64,000 nucleotides of DNA from Dimorphilus gyrociliatus (Eukaryota > Animalia > Annelida), in contig CAJFCJ010000005.1 in the NCBI GenBank assembly GCA_904063045.1, positions 945,988 through 1,009,987 on the forward strand, in the 5' to 3' direction. This document shows positions 1-63,043 of this stretch, piece after piece (position 1 is the stretch's first letter; each line of letters starts with the position of its first letter). The notes beneath the pieces are model-generated. The model ran no database searches, was not told the DNA's origin, and saw only the letters and a program-made list of their open reading frames with translations. The position numbers and the translations under genes are program-made.

Positions 1-3000
1 GTTGCCGCTTTTGACAATTATGTCAGATTAATGCAATCTAAATTTGTGGAGATGAACTCGAGATATACGAACTTGATGAAAATCTTCAAAAATTTCACGA
101 TAGGGAGCCTGCAACAAGTTGATTTACATAAAATTGACGACGAGTTACCCGACTTTGAAGAGGAGAGTCCCATTTTGGATACGAATCGAATTATATTCGA
201 TAGGTTTTCTGATGCTGAACTCAGGGAGAAGAAGGCTGTATTAGAAAAAGAGGCTTTCGAGTTATCTTCCTACTGTAAACTCAATCAGGAAGTCATTTCT
301 ACGTTGATGACCATTTGCCAAAGGTGAGTAAGATTTCTTTAGTCTCTCTATCGGATTAGAATTTTAGAAAAGAGAATTTACTAGCTGAGTAATTAGCTCT
401 GTTACGGAAAATTAATTAAATAATTTCTCCTTGTCTAAATAGAACACAAAAAGGATAAATGTGTCTTTTTTTTGAGGTAGAAGAAACATTTCATATATTT
501 ATACTAATTACGAAATAATTGCAAAAAAGTAAAATGTCACGAGACATTCGCCTTCGACAATCAAAGGCAAAGAATAGAGATATATGTCATTTAAAAGCCA
601 TATCTATGGTATACTGAACTAAATATTGTACATGTATAATTTTCTGGTTAAGATGTATACATTACGTATAATACGGTCTATTGGTAAGAGAAAAAGTTTT
701 TATGGTAGCACTATTAAACGGTTCCCTCTCATCAAACGCAAACCTAAAATCGACCGAGTACAACTAGGGGTGCGGGGAATATTGAATAACCATTGAACTT
801 AATTTTTATTAATAGCAGAAAGCCACCTGTAAAAATTGCTTTCTGTTTCATTTATAAGCTTTTCTACAATGAAACAACAATTGCTATAGGTTAAAAATGC
901 AACAGACAATAATCCGATACGAGTCTTTAATGGTTTCAGACCACTCGTTCTAATGGTTGGAAGAACTTTTTAGTAAGCCTTTGAATTTTTGTTAGACAGT
1001 CGATCCTTATCTTACAGCCTATTAGAAAGATATACACGCAGAGCATTCGTCTAATTTAATCGATTATTTTTTCCATTCGTCTTTTCAATTCTAGGCTTTA
1101 TTAATTTAATTTTAAGCCAACAATTTCTTTATTTTTTTCACTCCTTGACCTTCTTGTCCCAGTTGAATTAACAATTTTCTATCAACTATTTAACAGTTTT
1201 TCTCCTACACATTGTATACAAAAAATTTTCATGAGTATAGATAAAAGAGTAGCTTCTTAAATATTTATCCTGATCTTCATTTTCTAGTGGATATTAAAGA
1301 GCGTAACACAAATTTACATGATTCATAAATGTTTATCTAAATAATGACAATCTAAATTATTGTGCAGGCCTACAAGGCCAAAGGAAAAAAAAATACTAAT
1401 TAAAACAAAGCACCCTAAAGCCGATTGAATTGGCAGTAAAGATGCTTTTCTATAGTTTCTTGAGTTTTGTTTGAAGATTCTGTAAGTTTAAATTTAGGAG
1501 TTTAAAATTACTTTTTTCCTTTTTTTAGTAGTTTTGTTTTTTAATTTTTTTAATTTAAACTAAAAAAAATAAAAGCTAATTAAAAGAGAGAAAAGGAGGA
1601 GAAGATAGTAGAAAGGTTACTCTTTAAACATCAATAGAAAACTTACGTAATAGTATATAGTAAAGATTATTGTTTTCCTTTCATTCTTCGATTACTTTCA
1701 TAATAATCTATTGATTAATCCTTAGTAGTATACAATTTAACTATTTTACACTCTCCAACTATCTTCATACATGTATGCTATCATATTTTTCCCTTTGCAT
1801 ATATTTACCTGGACCACGATACATATAATTTACATTTAGTTTACTGTACTGATTTGTCTTACAAACAAGTAAGCCTGGATCATCGACAGAAGCAATTAGT
1901 CAATGGTGTAGGTGTATTTATATAAAAATCAGTAAAGCCAACAGATTGTTAGGCAGATTGTGACAATTATTGGTTTAACAAGTAATTTATTCTTATTGGA
2001 TTTTTTTCACAAAGATGAACCTGAATAGGAGAAATGATTGATGATTTATTAAATTTTTTCAAACAAATGCATTATCCATCCTGATTTCCTTAATACGTAC
2101 TATTATAGTATTATTATTATAACAGTATTACGTTGTTTTCTATTATATTCCTTTGAAATAATCAATATTCGAATATGTGTTGTACTAATTAAGAATGTTG
2201 GGAGAGAGGGAGAGAGAGAGAGTAGAGAAAAAGAGAGAAGAGAAGACAGATAGATAGACAGCTAGAGATGATAGGTATAAACCGCAACAGATTCAGTAAG
2301 GTGTATCACGTACACAATTGTAAGTCTATATTCAAATGCTTACGATAAAGGAAGATAGAGACAAAGAATAAAGGATAAATCTAGGCGAAATATTTCAATT
2401 CATTAAAAGAATCTAAAAAAGAAAAAAAATTTATTTTCGTTAAGTCTTATAAAAGAAATTTTCTTATTGATTAAAATATAATGCTTTATACATCGATCTG
2501 CAAATTATACTCCTTTCATACTCATCAGTTTCTAGGTGCAATTCATGTGTTTACTTCTTTGAAGTTTAGGTAAAAGCGTTCGCTTCTTGGGGCTAAAGGG
2601 AAATAGTTTCTTGACATTCGGTTTAACAGTAATGGATAGATAATAGGTCGATGCAAACCTTTATTAAAACAAACGATATACTTTATGAAAATATCATGTT
2701 ATTTTTTTGTAACGGATAAAGGAATACTTTTAAATGTCTCCTATCTTATTACTTATGACTTGAAAGATTAAAATTATCAACTTTAATCATATTCCACCGA
2801 GATTAGCCTTTGAAAGAAAAACTCTACGCTAACAACAACGAAAAGGAGCTTATTTTTTTTTCTTTCCATTCTTTGCCTTTGTCTGAAAAATAGATTAGTG
2901 GTATATATATATATATATATGTATGTATAAGAAAACCATGCCTCTCTCTTATTCTTTCCTCCTCTTACATCTCATATAGCTAATTCCAATACAGATGATT

Positions 3001-34272: not shown

Positions 34273-35565
34273 ATGAAAGTTATTCTATTGCTCCCTGCAA
34301 TTCTTGCAGTTCTTAGGGTCAGAAGAGCTTTAAATTTATCTCTTTTTTCTTATTTTTTTGTTTTTTTTTATATATGCAACTATCATCTCTTTCTTTTCAA
34401 TTTTCTGCAGGCTGAAACAATTCCAGAATGTGTTAAGACAGAATCGATTGAACAGTGTGTTGAAAATCGATTGGTTTGGTTTGAAATGAGCATTAGATCT
34501 AATTTAACGAAGATTGAAAGTCGTTTAAGTAAGTACAACAAAATAAAATATAGCTAAATCAATATGATCAATTGTTATTTTTTTGCGAAGGTGAATTAGA
34601 AAATAAATACAATGATGAAAGTAACATGGAAAATGGATTGGGGGATGAAATCAGACAAACTACTTTAAAACCTGAGAACTATAAAGTGAAAACAAGTACA
34701 AAGAAACTTCACACAACTAAAATGACAGAAAAGCCTACCGAAAAAAAAGAAGAGCACACTCAGCCAATGACAACAAAAACAATTGCTGATAAAATAACAA
34801 CAAAGGTAGATGAAATGAAGACAACAATGAGAGAAACACCTGAAATAGATATGACTACAGTAACCCCATCAACAGTAATGACAAAATCATCAACACCTGT
34901 AAAAGTGCCCTTAACCCGTAAATATATTTATAAAATAGGCATTAAAATTTATAATTAGCCCCTTACAAGAAAAAATGTATAATTGAATATCTTTTTTTTT
35001 TAAAAAGAAAAACTTATGTGTGATAAAACGCAAACGATAAATCAACTACCAAATTGCAATAACCCCAAGTATATTATCACCTCTCTCAACTATCCTCAGA
35101 GCTATCCATTTAATTATCAATGCAAAATTATTCTGGATGAAATAGATAATTCGGTAAGAAACTTGTAAAAATAATACCGTTAATCAGTCATTAAAAAAGA
35201 AATGCTTGTTTCAAAGGTAATCCATATCAAATTTCTGGATTTCCATGTTGAACAAGGCCAAAGTTGCCCTTTCGACAAGCTCACTTTCAAAGAAGGGAGT
35301 AATTCAGCTACTCTCTGCGGTAGAGGTTCGTAAAAAATATAAACTGCTAAATTATTTCGTTATCAACACTTTTTTATAAACAGGTCATATAATCCCGGAC
35401 GATAACGAAGTGGACCTATTCCAATCGAATATTGCTATTCCAAAGTTAAATACCACCTACACCATTGACCCGAATGGTCCAGTAGAAATATCATTCTTAT
35501 CTGATAATATTGTCAGAGAGAAAGGATTTGTCATGCATCTTGAATTCAAATGCGTCGACAATTAA
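34273..35565 (+). CDS. Secreted protein: short Cys-pair helix, Thr/Lys/Glu-rich mucin-like stalk, single CUB domain (paralogue C)
   Basis: Exons 34273-34317 (MKVILLLPAILAVLR), 34411-34528, 34591-34917, 35008-35153, 35217-35325, 35384-35565. Motifs TSLNYPQSYPFNYQC, FLDFHVEQGQSCPFDKL, FLSDNIVREKGF. Confidence 0.88.
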
Positions 35566-36843
35566 GCGAAAGAGGATGTTTGAATCTACAATTGGAAGAT
35601 TTTAATTTGTTCCTAATTTTAGTAATAAACTTACTTAAGCAAAAGAAAATAAAAACACTTTGTTTTATATTTCACATTCGAAGATGATCAAATTAGACGG
35701 TAACCTTAACCTTAACCCTAAGGAAGCGGTAAAAGATGATATCGATCATACGTCGCTGATTCTAGGAAAACCATTTTATATGCCTTGGAAAAAAGCTAAA
35801 AAAAAAAAACAGATATTCTTTCCAACATTAACAAAAATAGAAATGAAAGCACTTTGATCTAATTTAAGAATTAATATCGCTTAGGATCTTGTATATCGGT
35901 AGAGGTCTATTAACAGGTAACCTTGTGCTGGAATTTTACTAAATATAATCAATAAATTCCATTAAAAACAAAGACAAAAATGCAGAATTTGCAGAATTTG
36001 TTTATTTATGATTGAAATAACAACATTTCTGTAGTAGGGAGAAATAAGAGTATGAGAAGAGGGGAGATGATATTGATTTGTCTTAACAATATCCTTTTCG
36101 TCCATTCAAAATATTCTCTCTTGATTTACAATTCATTTTTTTCGTCAGTTTCCCTGTCTCTATCATTATATATAAAATTTTTACTTTTTCGGAAAATGGC
36201 CTCATTTCTAGACGAATCTCAACGAATTGAAAAGGAGCAATAAACAATGAAATTGAGGATTTATCATACAACACATTAGCATTTTGGTTACGTAATCCAA
36301 TCTTGCATAATTAACCTATCGATTCTAAAATGCCATATTTTCAATAGTCAAATAAAGGTAGATACTGTATATTAGGAAAGAAAGCAACAAAAAAAAAACA
36401 ATTAATTAAGTAAGCAGTCATATTGGGACGAGAAAAGAAAAAGTGAGTGGAGTAAAAGAAAGGCAATTGTTATTCTTTGGACTTAATCCTTATGAATAAA
36501 TGAGTATTTAGTGGAAGAAAAGATGAATTGGACTAGAAATAAGTAAATGGTTTTAGACATAGTATAAGCCTTAAAACTGAACTTCTATGTTGAAGAGTGA
36601 AGTAATAAAACATCTTTTAAGGGAATTCGTCGATTTTTCTTCTTGTTCTTTGTTACTAATCTTTGTTCCTCCCCCATTTTTAATATTTGCAACAATATTG
36701 CAGTTACTGCAGATCGCTACTATTAATTAATTGTAAAGATAATAAAAAGGATTTTCGATAAGAAATTTAAACATCTTTGTAAAATTGTGTGCCAAGAAGA
36801 ATTTTTCAATAATTCTAAATTTCGTTGATAATGTGTATTTACT

Positions 36844-38424
36844 TTATAATATTCGACAAGTTGCGCTAATTTGGCTCTTTTTATCACACGCTGAGTTAAT
36901 TTGGTACTTTTCCCCTTGTCTTTTAGGAGTATCTTTTGTAATTGTCTTTAAATCGATAGATTTACGTTTTTTATCCACATGATTTTCCATTTGATGGACG
37001 CTTTTTAATGAACCTCGTTTTAGACTATTTCCACGAAATCTATTGAAAATTAATTCGGAATCATCGATTTCGTCCAGTTCGTCTATTACGTCGAGTCTGG
37101 AACAGGTATCTATAACGGAACTTCTTCTACGCATTTTTCTCTCAAGTTCCTGAAATTGACTATTCGAACTCAAATCGCTGTCGGATAGGAAACTCTCAAA
37201 GTCATCTCTGTTATCGGAGGCTTGCGTGTCGATTGAGTCGGTTTGTTCAATATTTTTGAATAATGCATAATCTAACGAATTATCGGTATAGTCGCTCAAT
37301 ACAGTTCTGATTTGTTCCACCTTTTCAATGAAAACAACAGCGTAGCTAGATTCGAAAGTTGACAAGGTGTTAATATGCCTGTGGAAGGGATGAGGACAAT
37401 TTCCTGATTTGGCAGTTTCGTCGTACATTTTTAAAATTCGCAAAAATATCCTGAAGATATCGGAAGAGTTGGAAAGATATTTTTTCGCTATTCGAATCTT
37501 CATAGCGTTTAGGGAATATTCGGAGAGGACTTGACCGAATTTTTCATTTAGAATATCTATTAGATCAAATGCTAAACTCATACCAGTGTTTAATTCCCTT
37601 ATACCTTTTATGAGATGGTCTTCAATTGCACAGAAGCTAATATTCCATACGTTAAAATTTAATTCACCGTCTTTAGGGCAATTCTTTGTTAAAGACGTGC
37701 AATTTTTAGCTTCTAAGGACCATAGATGATCACCGTTGTCAATCTTATTTTTCACCGAATCGCCTACTGTCAGATAGGCAGAAAAATTTGGAATTGTCAA
37801 ATGAGCTGGCCATTTATTCATTTTGATTGCTGGAAATAGGTTCAAGTGCAATATGGTGCTTTCAATTCTACTCAGAGAAACAGTAATTGAAAGTAAAATA
37901 CTTGGAAAGATATTTTCTATTTTTAGATCTTCTATATAAGTCAAATTAAACCTTTTAACATTCTTTATGAGGACTGAAAGAGCAGCAGTAAGACCTTTAG
38001 TAAACCAATCATTAATTTCGACGGCTGTAAGACTATTTGAGGAATTCTTAAGGCAGGGTTTCCAAAATTTCTCTTCAATTCTACCTTCATCTTTACTAAG
38101 GCTACTTGATAATCTGCATTCCATTATAGACGGATTCAAATTCTTATGTAATACCTTGGCTTCAAAAGCAGCGCAGTGAATAGGTTTAGCTAAGAATATT
38201 CTCACATCGTAAATTCTACGATTCTCCTCTGTGATATCGAATTTATCAAATCTTAACCATTCAGCCGTTGATTTAATTCTTAGATATTGTATTGTCGTCT
38301 TAATAAAATGTTCAACTAATAAATTAATCCTTTCCCTTTTCTTTCGTTCAATTTCACGTTGTCTTCTCCATTTTTCGATTATACGTCTGAGGCATTGACT
38401 AATTATCTCGTCCTTATTTTCCAT
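36844..38424 (-). CDS. Mab-21/cGAS-like (cGLR-fold) protein, 526 aa, intronless, predicted catalytically inactive
   Basis: One long ORF. Mab-21 hallmarks are an N-terminal spine helix, LHLNLFPAI..NKWP, WNISFCAIEDHLI, LSEYSLNAM and CPHPFHRHINTL. The C-terminal ~140 aa are acidic/Ser-rich with RRRSS, RGNS and RKS motifs. Confidence 0.8.
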   Translation of the reverse strand: MENKDEIISQCLRRIIEKWRRQREIERKKRERINLLVEHFIKTTIQYLRIKSTAEWLRFDKFDITEENRRIYDVRIFLAKPIHCAAFEAKVLHKNLNPSIMECRLSSSLSKDEGRIEEKFWKPCLKNSSNSLTAVEINDWFTKGLTAALSVLIKNVKRFNLTYIEDLKIENIFPSILLSITVSLSRIESTILHLNLFPAIKMNKWPAHLTIPNFSAYLTVGDSVKNKIDNGDHLWSLEAKNCTSLTKNCPKDGELNFNVWNISFCAIEDHLIKGIRELNTGMSLAFDLIDILNEKFGQVLSEYSLNAMKIRIAKKYLSNSSDIFRIFLRILKMYDETAKSGNCPHPFHRHINTLSTFESSYAVVFIEKVEQIRTVLSDYTDNSLDYALFKNIEQTDSIDTQASDNRDDFESFLSDSDLSSNSQFQELERKMRRRSSVIDTCSRLDVIDELDEIDDSELIFNRFRGNSLKRGSLKSVHQMENHVDKKRKSIDLKTITKDTPKRQGEKYQINSACDKKSQISATCRIL

Positions 38425-39938
38425 AGCGGGCTCAATTTAATTTTACTTTATAACTATTAATTTAATAATATCTTGTATAGCTAAACTTTTGATTGGAGTA
38501 AAATATCAGTTTAATAAAGCTTCGAGTTACTTAAACAACATGCTAGGCTTAAACGAATATTGAATATTTTTCGGAAACATAACGTTCTCCAAGTATTATA
38601 GAACCAATGAACAGTTATTATAATGTATATATACTGTATAAGATACTAATATCTACAATATACTGGTTTTTTTTCAAATTAAGAGTCTTTGTGAGTTTAA
38701 TTTTCAGGTAACCTGGAAAAAAAAATCAATTTGCTATAGAAATTACGCGATCTCAATATATAAAGTATTTTTTTGCAACCACCTTTTATTACTATGGCAA
38801 CAATATATGAGAATTAGTTGCAGTAATATATATTTTATCTTTTTACTAATAGATTACAAGTAATTAATGAAGAAAAGTGTTTGGAATTTATTCTCTCACC
38901 TCTTTCTAATAATCTATTTAAATAGAAACGGAAGAAATTACAAGGCTTTTAATATCAAGTAACCAGCCAGGGTACTAAATTTTGGACAATCTTTTATATC
39001 TCTTTTCCATTATTGTCTACTTCTTTTTCGTTCATTTGAGTATATCTTTTAGTTCTCTTCCCGTCTCGTTTGAGAATTAGCTTATAAAAGTATCTTTAAT
39101 ATACGGCTGAAACGAGTACTATATTATTTCTAGCATGAATATATCATACCTCCAGCTAGAGAGGAGAGAGAGAGAGAGAGAGAAAGAGAGTGGAAAAAGA
39201 AGGTAATAACAAAAGTAAACAAACTATCTGCGGAGTAGTCAACCACTTTTTTTTTTTTTTTTTTAATTAATAATGGTCTGCAGAGAATAAGAAAATCTGT
39301 ATCGATTGTATTCCCTCAATCAAGTTAGACCACACCCCTTAATTCCGTGCGTTACTGTCTAACCTTTCTACCTATCTCTCTACTTGGAATTACATCAATT
39401 TTTTTTTACATATAAACAGCCTACATATTTACAAAATAATCCTATTTTCTTCTAGATCTTTTCCCCTCCGCTATCATTTTCCTTTAAACTAATATCAGTT
39501 TTTTCCTTTCATGTATAATTTTTTGGTTTTTGCATGCAAAATAATACTCTTTGAACGTTGATAGAAAAGACATCCTACATTTTTCATTCTCCTTCTCCTC
39601 GTATCTTGCCTCCTCATTTTCTTTGCTTTTGCTAATATTTTTTACCTAACGATAATTCTATTCTATTCTCTCGGAGAATAACAATAATCCTAGCTTAATC
39701 CATTTCTCAAGTTAAAATACGAGATTGAAGAATAAATGCATATTTTATATATATCTATATATTGTATATAAATAGTATTTACTATACGTTACGTCAGTTT
39801 AGCTATTATGTTAAATTACCTGTTGAGAGTACTTTTCGAGTTTATGCCAAATGCATCGCACACATCTCCAACCAATTATGTTTTGTTTTTGCGCTAGTAT
39901 TCTAAATTCTATTCCGACTGTATGGACATCGTATAGTT

Positions 39939-40770
39939 ATGGCACCTACCGCAATATGGAGAAGTATAACAACAACTATTGCTAGCATATTTAAATCATC
40001 GTCACATATCAAGAACTTTACAATACTTATTATCTTATACACTTTTACGGGTCTAATAGCTGATACAAATATTCAACGTTTGTATTATCTAGAATTAAGC
40101 GTTAACATTCTTAAAAAACCCATTTATCGCTCAGGCTCCTTTCTTTGTCGGCAATGCGGTCATACAGTTGTATTTGCCAATGATCTTACTAGGGTTGCTA
40201 GCGACATGTCGCTGAGACAGAGAAACGATAGTCTTCTGGGAAGGAAGGGAACATTGATACAACTCTTACAAAACCCTGCCGGGGCTAGATTCGAGGTGAT
40301 TACATCAAAGAGAGCTCATGTAACCAAATCTACGGTGGTAAATATATTGTTTTTAACCTCTTAACCTAATTTATAATAAGCATATAATCTCATAAATACA
40401 TACGTTTATCATTCTTTCTAGACTGTAAGCTCAGACACTTGGTTTACTGGTTTTTCGTGGAGAATTGCAACTTGCCCAAAGTGCCATTTTCATTTAGGAT
40501 GGTATAAATACGGTTAAATACATTTATTAAACATTGTTTTATTCAAGTATTTCTATCCATTTGTAGGAGCTACGAACCTCTCTTCTATAAAGGTGGATTA
40601 GCCGATTCCAAAGATACTTTTTATGCCTTAATCTTAGATAATTTATTGGATGAAACTTGTACGTTAATCCTTATTTACATAATGCTTATATTCTAATATG
40701 AAATGTATTTTAAATTCAATTAACAGATGCCGATAATCTAATTATAACTCCAAAAGTTTATCAGAGTTGA
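39939..40770 (+). CDS. Stand-alone CULT (cereblon thalidomide-binding) domain protein with N-terminal signal/anchor
   Basis: Exons 39939-40077, 40135-40337, 40422-40501, 40567-40658, 40727-40770 (TGA). Motifs CRQC ... NPAGARFEVI ... DTWFTGFSWRIATCPKCHFHLGW give both CxxC pairs and three Trp. Hydrophobic stretch FTILIILYTFTGLIA; no LON domain. Confidence 0.9.
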
Positions 40771-44800: not shown

Positions 44801-45770
44801 TTAAATACAATACTTTCCAACTTCATCGAACATCGTATGAACATCGTAATCTCTGGCTCTTCTTGAGGAATTAAAGCGTGATTTTCTTTGGTTACTGTTT
44901 TTCAGATTGAAAATATCATTCTTCTCTTCAACACTTAATAAAGTTTTGTAGCAATTGAATATACTATTCAACTCAAGAGCCGACATTGTTGGAAATCTAA
45001 TGTCGTATAAAAGATCTCCCAATATTTCCCGCGCTTCTCCCTTCTCGTTCTTTGTCCATTCCATAAGAAAGCAAAAGAGATCGTATTCCGTGCAAGATAT
45101 CTCTTCTAAAAGTAATATATCTTTAAAGCTCTCTCTTCCGAGATAATCTAATCCGTTTTCCAAACATTGAGCTGTTTGAACAGAAATTAAGCAAAGACAT
45201 TTGACTTTGATCTCATCATCTTTCAACCATTTTGACGCTTGTAGATAGAGGCAGACGTCTTGAATACTTTCAGACATATTTGATAGGATTTTCTGTCTGC
45301 AGAGGCTTTTCATTTGAGGTAGAATGTATTTTTCAGCCAAATATAATAACTCGACAAGAACATCTCCAGAATTATTTAAAAGCTTTGAATCCTTCGAATA
45401 AATGTACCTATATGTTTAGATCATAGCGTTTATTAGTTGTTTGTTATGAATAACAATTTAAAGCAAAGAGAAATAAGACTGTGAAACATATTGTGCCTGG
45501 AAGAAGGAAATACCTTAAAAATAATTTAAAGGCTTCCGGAGTTGTATCTTCAATAAGTATGGGATCTTGTTGCGACCATGTATTGGATAACATGGTTCGG
45601 AAAACCATACTTTCGCAGAACAATAACACACGATGAGCCTTGATTATTACCTCTTTACCATTATCAACAATCTTGAATGATATATCAGCAAATAGTCCAT
45701 TCTCGACTAACTGACACATTTGAACACATCGATTAAAGTCTTTATGCGAAATTGTATCTATATCTTCCAT
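44801..45770 (-). CDS. BTB/POZ-BACK domain protein
   Basis: Exons 45770-45514 and 45407-44801. Motifs FADISFKI..IKAHRVLLFCESMVFRTML, IEDTTPEAFKLFLRYIYS, LLYLAEKYILPQMKSLC, EISCTEYDLF, IRFPTM. The 3' end could splice further. Confidence 0.88.
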
Positions 45771-60400: not shown

Positions 60401-63043
60401 ATATATATTTCTTTTTATATATAAACATATGTATATTTAGGAGGAAAAGGGATAAATAACTTTTGAAAAAAGAGCGGAATAATTAGGATTTTCTTCTATA
60501 ATCTATAGAATGTATAACCTTAAATTTCATATTGATATTTTATTAATTAAAAAAGATAATCCTATAATGAATAGTTGACGGTTTCTATAGGAATTTGTCA
60601 AAATCATCTTCTAAATATCGGGCTTATTTGCAATTGTATAGTCATATTAAACTGAAAAAAGGCCGTTTTGCTTTAAACAGGAAAACCTTTTAGTACCTTT
60701 GCTGGAGTACAGATTTTTTGGACTCAAGTGGTGTGAAGAGTGTTTTTGTAAGTAATATGCACTGGCGCGACAAATGATTTATTGAACGACGCAAAGCGTC
60801 ACTTGTAAGCTATGTAGAGATATTTATAAGGATACTTTTTCAGAAAAAAGCCATCACCTAAAAATACATTCTATAGTCTATGTTTTGTGAGAACAACACT
60901 CCAATTCCTTGTTCCTTTGCAACGAGAAAGGAATAAAAAAAAAGCATCAAACGACCTTGAAATAGGTCTTTTTCGTTCGAAATTTGGTATTTTGATGAAC
61001 TTGCCAAGAGCAAAACTAGATTCTAAGGAAGAGTATGAAACCGGAAACAGGAAGAACTAGAAATAAATGCACTGTATACTTCAGCTGGCAAAAAGAGAGA
61101 AGTTCGCTTTTTGCTTGATCTATTTTGTTCAGACGAGTATGTATATTTTGTAAATTATTTGAAATTTACACCTTTAAAAGGCGTATTGAGGAGAAATTCT
61201 GATATTGGAGACGGCGCTCTCTCTTTTTTTTGCATAAAAATTTCATATAACGCCGCTTTACAAAGGCAGTTTGTCATCGGATGATGGAAGAATCGACGTG
61301 AAACTCATATTTTAACATGTTTCGTATATTGACTATCTATAGTTTGTTGTAACATTAACAGGTTGAATCAATCTCGTACATTGGAAAGCTTGCAATTACG
61401 CCTATACCTACAGATGTCGCTACTGAATAGTTTACACGAAATTTTTAAATTATCTCCCTTTTATCCTAGTTAAAAAACAATTATTTTTCTTTTTTATATA
61501 CTTTTATACAAGATATTAGCAATTTTCTACTGGTACTTTGGCTCAATTATAGTCCTATAAAGAGATATATAGGCTAAAATAGAATTTACTACTATTTGTA
61601 GAAGGGAAAATTGTCTAAGGTAACTACGTTATCAATCAAACTACCTCTCTTCTTTCTCAAGTATTTCAAGAATTGTTAATTGCTTATGGTTAGTATTGTA
61701 GTATAGCTAACAAACCTCAACTTCTTCAGCCGTCTGCTGATCTACCGGAACTTCCGTTCTAGTTTCATCATTCTCTTCTATGGCATTAGCATTTTCCTGT
61801 TCATTATCCGAAGTCTTAGCTTTAAACACTCCTCCCTCATCTAATATGTTTTATTGTTTGGTGAAAAAGGAATAGACGTAAAATTAGAATTTAAAAAGAC
61901 AAACGATTTCTCAAGAGAGAAAAAACTGTACCTTTGTCATAATCAGTCTCCCTAACCTTTTCAGGGCTTCTTTTTGGTCTGACAGGTTTCGAATGGAAAA
62001 GGTCATCTTCAGGTCGTTTTTGTCTATTTTAGTTTGTAAGATATAACAAATTTACTAAAGAAAAGTATATAAAATTTATACAGTATAGTTTAATAAGAAG
62101 GCATGTTGGCATGTTTATATAAATTTTATGAAAGGATAAAATATCTACCTTGGTTTTCTCGATCCTTTATTGTTATTATTGCGATCATAAGGGGGTTCTG
62201 ATTGGGTTGTTCTTTGAGTTTCTTCTGTTTGATTAGACGCGGCCGAATTATCAGACGTTCTAGCTCTCCTCGAATTAATGGGTGGTAGTTTTCTTAAAGA
62301 AAGGAAAAAGGAAGAAATTAATTACGTTCACCAATATTAATATTTAAAGATATGAAACATTTAATCCTCGTTAAATTATTCTCTATAGAATAAAAAATTA
62401 ATACGTTAATTAAACAATAAGGTATAATAAAAAACCTTTTTTGAAGTCTGGGAGATGTCGTAAACGGTGCGCTATCATGACTGCCATAATTGGCCATTTT
62501 AAAGCCTTCTCTTCCAACAGCAACATATTTTTCGTTCATTTCTAGTTCCTGCATACCGTGTATAACAGATCCGTCTGTTCTGCATAATTTTAATACGGCT
62601 CCTAAATTTAAAAAAAAAAATAAAAGAAAACAATAACAAATTATTAGAATATTAGAATAGTTCAAAGGAAATTACATAGATTCAACACTTCGTTGGTTCA
62701 ATAATAATTAATTAGCCATAAAGCGATAGATGGCTCCAGTATCGTTTAAGCACGATAACAAGCTAATTTTATTACCTGTAACCAAATCGATTCTATCCGT
62801 TATTTCACTCAAAACTGAAGTAAAATTACGCTTTAAATGCGAATTTACGTTGATTCTCTTCGCCGGTCTCCAGTCTTGACCATTCGTATAAACACTGTTG
62901 TTAAAATCAAAAAAAAAAGCTATTGATTAGGATAACTAAGTCGATTTAAGCCATAATACAAACTATATAACGAGAATATCTATTGGTACTTTCCGACATC
63001 TTCCTGATACTTGTATCGAACGATTGTGTTCTACAGGCCTCAC
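57484..63043 (-). CDS. DCDC2: DCDC2-like doublecortin-domain protein (5'-partial) with IQ motif and long acidic tail
   Basis: Exons from 63043 (VRPVEHNRSIQVSGR), 62894-62776 and 62601-62436 (GAVLKLCRTDG..YVAVGREGFK, DCX domain), then PEDDLFHSKP and DEGGVFKA...EVPVDQQTAEE (matching my recollection of the DCDC2 C-terminal motif), 58561-58478 (AAIKIQSTYRGHATRK) and the final exon 58293-57484. The first DCX domain is expected beyond the window. Confidence 0.82.
59784..61202 (+). CDS. Candidate nested antisense gene inside a DCDC2-like intron (5'-incomplete, unknown product)
   Basis: Phase-compatible exons 59784-59846, 59966-60007, 60072-60137, 60187-60207, 60681-60747, 61085-61136, 61181-61202 with donors gtaagg, gtaagc, gtaaac, gtatta, gtaagt, gtatgt. 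No domain recognised and no start codon found. Confidence 0.35.
61407..61422 (+). promoter_or_regulatory. CTCF-like motif (CCTACAGATGTCGCTA)
   Basis: One to two mismatches from the CTCF core; intronic. Confidence 0.4.

Follow-up and report, generated by a model that had tools for sequence, protein, structure and literature searches.

An expressed Mab-21-fold protein of the annelid Dimorphilus gyrociliatus with a degenerate active site and a candidate C-terminal CaaX box

Results

We analysed a 64-kb window of the genome of the annelid Dimorphilus gyrociliatus (the window being the whole stretch of 64,000 nucleotides, positions 945,988 to 1,009,987 of contig CAJFCJ010000005.1), with attention to a gene on its minus strand whose coding part is one ATG-to-TAA open reading frame (ORF), 36844-38424, for a protein of 526 aa. 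Of the window's 14 ORFs of at least 110 aa it is the longest by a wide margin, and since a frame of 526 codons is far beyond chance at the G+C content of ~30% found across the window, we regard it as real. The gene very likely encodes an expressed, catalytically inactive protein of the Mab-21 fold. The features of the transcript, with its untranslated regions (UTRs) and coding sequence (CDS), and of the encoded protein are as follows.

36781..36843, minus strand: 3' UTR within the transcript contig, with a variant AGTAAA signal and no genomic A-tract after it (transcript contig, sequence).
36844..38424, minus strand: complete CDS, 526 codons plus TAA, uninterrupted (ORF listing; transcript contig with 0 mismatches).
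36847..36858, minus strand: CaaX box C523-R-I-L526 (TGT CGA ATA TTA, then TAA), a candidate geranylgeranylation signal (sequence, transcript contig).
36859..37059, minus strand: basic half of the tail, residues 456-522, with RFRGNS, KRGS and KKRKS sites of basophilic-kinase type, KKRK also resembling a nuclear localisation signal (NLS) (composition, motif counts).
37060..37239, minus strand: acidic, Ser-rich half of the tail, residues 396-455, net charge -11, with RRRSS at 432-436 (composition, motif counts).
37240..38424, minus strand: Mab-21/cGAS-type core, residues 1-395, with a long N-terminal spine helix, a degenerate nucleotidyltransferase (NTase) lobe and a helical C-lobe (Pfam, family profile against the PDB, Atlas model).
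37807..37860, minus strand: residues 189-206, STILHLNLFPAIKMNKWP, the strand of the third Asp in cGAS, with Asn195 instead (alignment, acidic-residue scan).
38185..38265, minus strand: residues 54-80, AEWLRFDKFDITEENRRIYDVRIFLAK, the expected place of the G[GS] loop and of the [DE]h[DE] strand, with I71-Y72-D73 or K61-F62-D63 instead (two alignments, motif scan).
38425..38712, minus strand: 5'-UTR part of exon 2, with two short upstream ORFs (uORFs) ended by a TAA 15 nt before the start codon (transcript contig, sequence).
38713..38899, minus strand: 5'-UTR intron of 187 nt, GT..AG (GTGAGA...TTTCCAG) (spliced contig and sequence).
38900..39153, minus strand: 5'-UTR exon 1, with 4 ATG triplets; its extent is a lower bound, as the contig stops at a skipped repeat (transcript contig).

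The transcript evidence comes from one public run (X1, 2017) of unrecorded type, which was taken as RNA because its contigs show GT..AG joints. A contig of 2,222 nt matches 36781-38710 and 38898-39153 with 0 mismatches and skips 187 nt between them, and thus the gene is expressed; it is transcribed and spliced. The skip was reported as 38711-38897 ("cut +2") and was shifted to 38713-38899 by honouring GT-AG. The gene had originally been described as intronless, which holds for the CDS and not for the gene, given this intron in its 5' UTR. At 187 nt the intron is nearly three times the median of the genome (66 bp), in which many introns have been lost overall (PMC7854359). A TAA in frame, 15 nt upstream of the ATG, lies within the same exon, so exon 1 adds nothing to the protein. 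With at least 542 nt the 5' UTR is unusually long, and it has six upstream ATGs, two of which open short uORFs in frame with the main ORF; translational control could be the consequence.

Membership of the Mab-21 family was examined with HMMER profiles, structure databases and predicted models. The Pfam profile of the Mab-21 NTase (PF03281) scored 24.1 bits, which is exactly its gathering cut-off, and over profile positions 36-197 only, whereas that of Mab-21_C (PF20266) fell short of the cut-off with an E value of 0.04; the profile match on which the original prediction was to be judged is thus marginal for the first of these and below the cut-off for the second. A relative from Owenia fusiformis (P0002) clears both cut-offs. 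As the Pfam support is borderline, the fold assignment leans mainly on profile and structure evidence. A profile built from the protein and its relatives, referred to here as the clade profile, matched the sequences of the Tribolium Tc-cGLR (7LT2, E 6e-11) and the Stylophora Sp-cGLR1 (8GJY, E 2e-9), mainly in the helical C-lobe, and more weakly those of MB21D2 (7LT1, E 0.005), MiD51 (E 0.17) and MAB21L1 (E 0.55); phmmer with the single 526-aa sequence gave no match among PDB sequences. The ESM Atlas model of the exact protein, with a predicted template modelling score (pTM) of 0.61, placed the MB21D2 cluster first with template modelling (TM) scores of 0.54/0.63, and the MiD49/51 clusters gave ~0.50/0.56, the Atlas alignments spanning ~320-400 residues within 21-417. 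By sequence features, the nearest atlas clusters were large molluscan Mab-21 groups, at 0.91 for the 526-aa protein and at 0.96 (200/256 features) for the Owenia relative, and a TMEM102 cluster was found at 0.90, which we take as a lead only. The motifs of the helical lobe, said to be intact in the original prediction, are indeed present: W-x-I-S-F and C-P-H-x-F...I-N align with the true mab-21 of the genome and with the Owenia relative. The protein's place in the Mab-21/cGAS superfamily is thus well supported, and the nearest branch looks like the invertebrate cGAS-like receptor (cGLR)/MB21D2 side, not MiD or ITPRIP.

An exhaustive HMMER search over 1.84 billion representatives retrieved none of MB21D2, MiD49/51, ITPRIP/ITPRIPL and TMEM102 at E <= 0.001. 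For MB21D2, the profile E value was 0.005 and the active site, which MB21D2 itself is reported to have complete (PMC9980059), is incomplete in the 526-aa protein. For MiD49/MiD51, there is no N-terminal transmembrane anchor, the profile E value was 0.17 and the MID51-like_C domain (PF21297) gave no match in the protein. The hydrophobic N-terminus looked for under ITPRIP/ITPRIPL/TMEM102 is also absent, as no N-terminal transmembrane or signal segment was found in the protein, whose maximum 19-residue hydropathy is 1.34 and not N-terminal.

Published cGLRs are defined by a cGAS-like fold, a G[S/G] activation loop and an [E/D]h[E/D] X50-90 [E/D] catalytic triad (Li et al. 2023, PMC9980059). We scanned for these motifs independently of the alignment register and also inspected alignments in two registers. 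There is no glycine in residues 1-113, and the sole G[GS] of the protein is at residue 471, in the tail. The scan gave no [DE]h[DE] triplet in the core strands, such triplets being confined to the spine helix (E24-I-E26) and the tail. The NTase core reads FDKFDITEENRRIYDVRIF at residues 59-77, as had been read, with I-Y-D in place of E/D-h-D and no G[GS] before residue 471; here I71-Y72-D73-V-R-I-F-L aligns with E-F-E-V-V-L-F-L of the genome's own mab-21 and with E-I-Q-C-R-V-L-M of Owenia. In the alternative register given by MAFFT, K61-F62-D63 takes this place, so that one of the first two carboxylates survives in either register. Residues 189-215, a span that includes the strand T-I-L-H-L-N-L-F-P-A-I corresponding to the third-Asp strand of active enzymes, hold no acidic residue, and Asn195, in L-N-L, occupies the place of the third catalytic Asp; this agrees with the earlier reading of LHLNLFPAI (residues 192-200). 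Whatever the register, the protein lacks the G[GS] of the activation loop as well as two catalytic carboxylates out of three, the first metal-binding one and the third, in line with the earlier view of the protein as catalytically dead, and its inactivity is well supported at the level of sequence. The cGLR label that it had been given does not hold, since neither the G[S/G] loop nor the triad of the published definition is present.

The same exhaustive search returned one true relative outside the genome, the Owenia fusiformis protein P0002 (27% identity, E 2e-10), and six-frame searches of the genome returned a paralogue, P0008 (DgyrCDS1078; L005/L008, G000:C2:736343-740257), that is ~22% identical. 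The only true relatives found are this paralogue and the Owenia proteins CAH1786134/5 (P0002 and P0007), P0007 being a near-duplicate of P0002. Word-index protein searches with the 526-aa protein, the clade alignment and the Owenia relative returned only the genome's own two genes, and given their limited sensitivity they have little bearing on the true distribution. Four larger proteins, P0003-P0006 (843-4775 aa), were rejected as relatives: they match only residues ~216-259, through a repeated DNGDGxWTL...LTxxPPxD unit, and the match was judged to be chance, because the best pairwise E value of 3e-6 is not significant at database scale and the 4-7 repeats in each protein inflate the score. 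In the relatives, the residues concerned (216-259; 37648-37779, minus strand) align with ordinary Mab-21 core.

The paralogue has 664 aa, keeps the GG loop, has E-F-N for the E-h-D of cGAS and Asn at the third site, and ends in an acidic tail of ~230 residues, rich in Ser and with poly-Ser runs. In its CDS, introns (one or more) are confined to the first ~170 residues and are followed by a terminal exon of 505 aa. It thus differs from the 526-aa protein in the GG loop, the first Glu, the interrupted CDS and the lack of a CaaX box; its tail is long, acidic and Ser-rich, and Owenia has almost none. In a tree of six rows, from which P0007 and the tails were excluded and which held no reference-family sequences, the 526-aa protein, P0008 and Owenia grouped together with support 85/94, apart from three other Mab-21-like proteins of the genome (L003, L004 and L006), on branches that are all very long. 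The clade shares an N-I/L-x-P-x-I...W-P strand, a W-x-x-S/N-F motif and a P-x...I-N motif, and 26 columns are invariant across the 526-aa protein, Owenia and the paralogue. Asn195 is invariant in the 526-aa protein, P0008 and both Owenia proteins, while other active-site positions differ by member, with GG-x8-E-F-N in the paralogue and E-I-Q without GG in Owenia. As Asn195 is invariant in the only relatives found, the catalytic loss is probably old, and the pattern is consistent with catalysis having been lost long ago, after which the freed positions drifted while Asn was kept for the sake of structure or of binding a ligand. The Owenia and Dimorphilus lineages span the base of the annelid tree.

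We also searched the 77.9-Mb, 349-contig assembly in six frames with PF03281, PF20266 and the clade profile. The original prediction drew on the expanded cGLR families of animals, and D. gyrociliatus does not conform to this, as only five Mab-21-like loci were found, none of which (0/5) has a complete G[GS]...[DE]h[DE]h...h[DE]h set. The true mab-21 (L003) is one ORF of 387 aa. A second locus (L004, G000:C8:1329288-1332572) holds a single-exon ORF of 348 aa (826-1872, plus strand; Mab-21_C E 1e-10) with a C-G-S loop, I-A-D and I-Y-F at the carboxylate positions and a weak MTPAP-like palm match, and is probably, judging from these residues, another inactive family member. A third (L006, G000:C27:253506-256646) holds a single-exon ORF of 503 aa (1432-2943, minus strand) that matches Mab-21_C weakly (E 0.13) and has a hydrophobic stretch at about residue 108. 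The STING ligand-binding domain (PF15009) gave no match in the six-frame search, which was run exon by exon and had no positive control, so that absence of STING is suggested only. The cGLR-STING pathway may have been lost in the compact genome of D. gyrociliatus; nematodes and flatworms are reported to have lost cGLR signalling (Li et al., PMC9980059).

The single-exon coding region had suggested a possible retrocopy. No A-tract or poly(A) remnant was found downstream of the 3' end, the gene is single-copy with its nearest paralogue only ~22% identical, and no close intron-bearing parent was found in the genome; in three other Mab-21-like genes, the true mab-21, L004 and L006, the coding region is likewise a single exon. 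With no near parent, no A-tract and a spliced UTR, a retrocopy origin is unsupported, though a retroposition may have taken place in the distant past.

From about residue 396 no homology could be detected, and the protein is modelled there as disordered, the AlphaFold2 (AF2) predicted local distance difference test (pLDDT) score being below 35 from residue 380. An acidic, Ser-rich tail with phosphorylation motifs had been described; the motifs are all there (RRRSS 432-436, RGNS 464-467, KRGS 469-472 and RKS 487-489, the second and last within the longer RFRGNS 462-467 and KKRKS 485-489), but the tail is acidic in one half only, residues 456-526 having a net charge of +10. Dibasic-x-S/T occurs four times, with an overlap between two of these, where shuffling the tail at constant composition leads one to expect 0.79 (P ~0.006, post hoc); no enrichment in the tail was seen for CK2-type or looser basic motifs, and comparison with the tail of P0008 gave no conserved motif (best E 0.33). 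The protein ends, in the genome and in the transcript contig alike, in a CaaX-type box that the original prediction had not noted, with Cys at -4, Ile at a2 and Leu at X, and with Arg at a1. Human OAS1 p46 requires its CTIL box for geranylgeranylation, and the box alone suffices; a Leu at X makes GGTase-I the favoured enzyme (PMC8357416). On sequence grounds it is possible, rather than probable, that CRIL is really prenylated.

Neighbouring genes on the plus strand contain several introns, 57-90 nt in length (34600-35645, and from 39919 to past 40500), and the earlier description of them as intron-rich was accurate. In the neighbour at 39919-40500, with introns of 57 and 84 nt, contig depth is far above the rest of the stretch examined, and its 141-aa ORF (39939-40364) has no Pfam match. 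Elsewhere on the minus strand, an exon-sized ORF at 44804-45340 has a BACK domain (E 6e-6) and another at 62321-62665 has a doublecortin domain (E 1e-7); these are probably pieces of multi-exon genes that are unrelated to the 526-aa protein.

Discussion

The bilobed Mab-21 fold is common to the 526-aa protein and the invertebrate cGLRs (Tc-cGLR 7LT2 and Sp-cGLR1 8GJY), which are its best profile matches among solved structures. Those enzymes have the G[S/G] loop and the [E/D]h[E/D]...[E/D] triad, whereas the 526-aa protein has neither, so it is not a cGLR and synthesis of cyclic dinucleotides is not expected. MiD49/51 have the same fold and show how a dead NTase fold can serve as a membrane-tethered receptor and scaffold, as Drp1 adaptors. 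They are anchored by an N-terminal transmembrane helix, unlike the 526-aa protein, which lacks one and whose candidate tether would, if any, be a C-terminal lipid; the sequence relation is weak (E 0.17, no MID51-like_C). Human OAS1 p46 is an NTase-fold relative from innate immunity that ends in CTIL, compared with CRIL here, but it belongs to the OAS branch and not to the Mab-21 branch, is catalytically active and gains its CaaX box by alternative splicing, and prenylation of the worm's box is only predicted. The Mab-21 fold is already known in inactive form from MiD49/51, ITPRIP, TMEM102 and the Mab21 proteins of shrimp; a dead cGAS relative is thus unsurprising in itself, and the 526-aa protein falls within this known class. 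The shrimp proteins LvMab21-1/2/3 signal by binding and activating IKK-epsilon without nucleic acid binding and without making cGAMP (PMC12928593), and thus provide a precedent for non-catalytic Mab-21 signalling, although they have no detectable close sequence relation to the 526-aa protein. To our knowledge, the Mab-21 branch has no described member in which a soluble Mab-21 body is joined to a disordered, bipartite tail and a CaaX box.

Taking these data together, we consider it reasonably probable that the gene encodes an expressed, single-copy and highly diverged member of the Mab-21/cGAS superfamily, which has kept the bilobed fold, has no catalysis and works as a tail-tethered, non-enzymatic adaptor. 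In this proposal the Mab-21 body would bind a partner or ligand, and the ~130-residue disordered tail would set where and when the adaptor acts. Membrane attachment would come from a geranylgeranyl group on CRIL together with the tail's basic half, and would be tuned by phosphorylation at the basophilic, PKA/AGC-type sites and by the adjacent acidic half. In the Ras/Rho tails of small GTPases, membrane targeting classically relies on such a layout, a CaaX box preceded by a basic stretch. The lipid tether and phospho-switch are put forward tentatively. What the data show directly is the ORF, that it is transcribed and spliced, its place in the family and the lack of the catalytic motifs, and what we infer is inactivity, the scaffold or adaptor role, prenylation and phosphorylation; the role of decoy, scaffold or regulator suggested in the original prediction likewise stands as an inference.

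Several observations weigh against this proposal. The Pfam support for Mab-21 membership is borderline, and the AF2 model, built from a six-sequence alignment, has low confidence (pLDDT 41, pTM 0.27); in a Foldseek search with it the top rows were all Mab-21-family chains, but the best match (E 0.012, TM score ~0.2) was not significant. Expression is seen in the single run X1, whose status as RNA was judged from splicing alone. The a1 residue of the CaaX box is Arg and not the textbook aliphatic residue, neither the box nor the phosphorylation motifs are conserved in the paralogue (P0008) or in Owenia (P0002), ~1-2% of proteins end in CaaX anyway (PMC10541624), and the enrichment test for dibasic-x-S/T was made post hoc. 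Finally, D60, D63, E66, E67, D73 and E88 are possible alternative acidic residues at the active site.

Five of these last residues figure in a different explanation, that the protein is an active nucleotidyltransferase with a non-canonical residue set, in which the retained D73 would work with D60, D63, E66 and E67 of the loop preceding it and Asn195 would ligate metal weakly, as Asn is able to do. We regard this as extremely improbable, as the activation loop has no glycine, a second carboxylate spaced i/i+2 on a strand is missing, the third strand has no carboxylate at all, and the same positions vary among the clade members, which is unexpected for a working site. Another alternative is a decaying or neutrally evolving retrocopy, functionless and transcribed incidentally, and the single-exon CDS, the very long branch, the single relative outside the genome and the long 5' UTR with its six upstream ATGs could all be read in this way. 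However, a 526-codon frame in a genome of 30% GC, a properly spliced 5'-UTR intron in a clean transcript and the 26 invariant columns, which include the core motifs, speak for a maintained protein, and neither a poly(A) remnant nor a close intron-bearing parent accompanies the single-exon structure, which other Mab-21-like genes of the genome have as well; decay of this kind is thus highly improbable.

It is also improbable that the gene is a plain, fast-diverged orthologue of a known inactive or orphan Mab-21 branch (MB21D2, MiD49/51, ITPRIP/ITPRIPL or TMEM102). The first rank of the MB21D2 cluster in the Atlas structure search, the TMEM102 cluster at 0.90 and the long branches of D. gyrociliatus would agree with such an origin, but none of these families was retrieved at E <= 0.001 by the exhaustive search, the profile E values of 0.005 (MB21D2) and 0.17 (MiD51) are weaker than those of the invertebrate cGLRs, there is no N-terminal transmembrane or signal segment (maximum hydropathy 1.34) and no PF21297 match, and the complete active site reported for MB21D2 (PMC9980059) is not found. 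A closer competitor accepts the inactive Mab-21 fold and takes the CRIL end as fortuitous, the protein being soluble or nuclear, with KKRK (485-488) and the basic N-terminal helix acting as NLS or in nucleic-acid binding and regulation taking place in the nucleus or cytosol. The very basic N-terminal helix KWRRQREIERKKRER and the KKRK motif are consistent with this, as are the absence of the box from the paralogue and Owenia and the background of CaaX-like ends in 1-2% of proteins (PMC10541624). On the other side, Ile at a2 and Leu at X are as in CTIL, a proven GGTase-I substrate box, and the basic stretch before the box has the classical membrane-targeting layout, so we give a soluble or nuclear protein a low, although appreciable, probability.

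We return to the tail-tethered, non-enzymatic adaptor. The loss of catalysis looks ancient and selected, as the Asn at the third site does not vary between Owenia and Dimorphilus. On a bolder and, in our estimate, rather unlikely extension, annelids have an old clade of pseudo-enzymes that descend from cGLRs, with Asn fixed in place of the third catalytic Asp, and one Dimorphilus member is now a geranylgeranyl-anchored, phosphorylation-gated adaptor. If this were true, Mab-21 signalling would persist without a nucleotide second messenger, in parallel to shrimp Mab21-IKK-epsilon and to prenylated OAS1, which a soluble Mab-21 body with a CaaX tail echoes. If the Mab-21-like genes are all degenerate and STING is absent, D. 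gyrociliatus would resemble the nematodes and flatworms in which cGLR signalling has been lost, and, should the tether and phospho-switch prove true, the protein would offer a compact model for signalling by pseudo-enzymes of the Mab-21 family.

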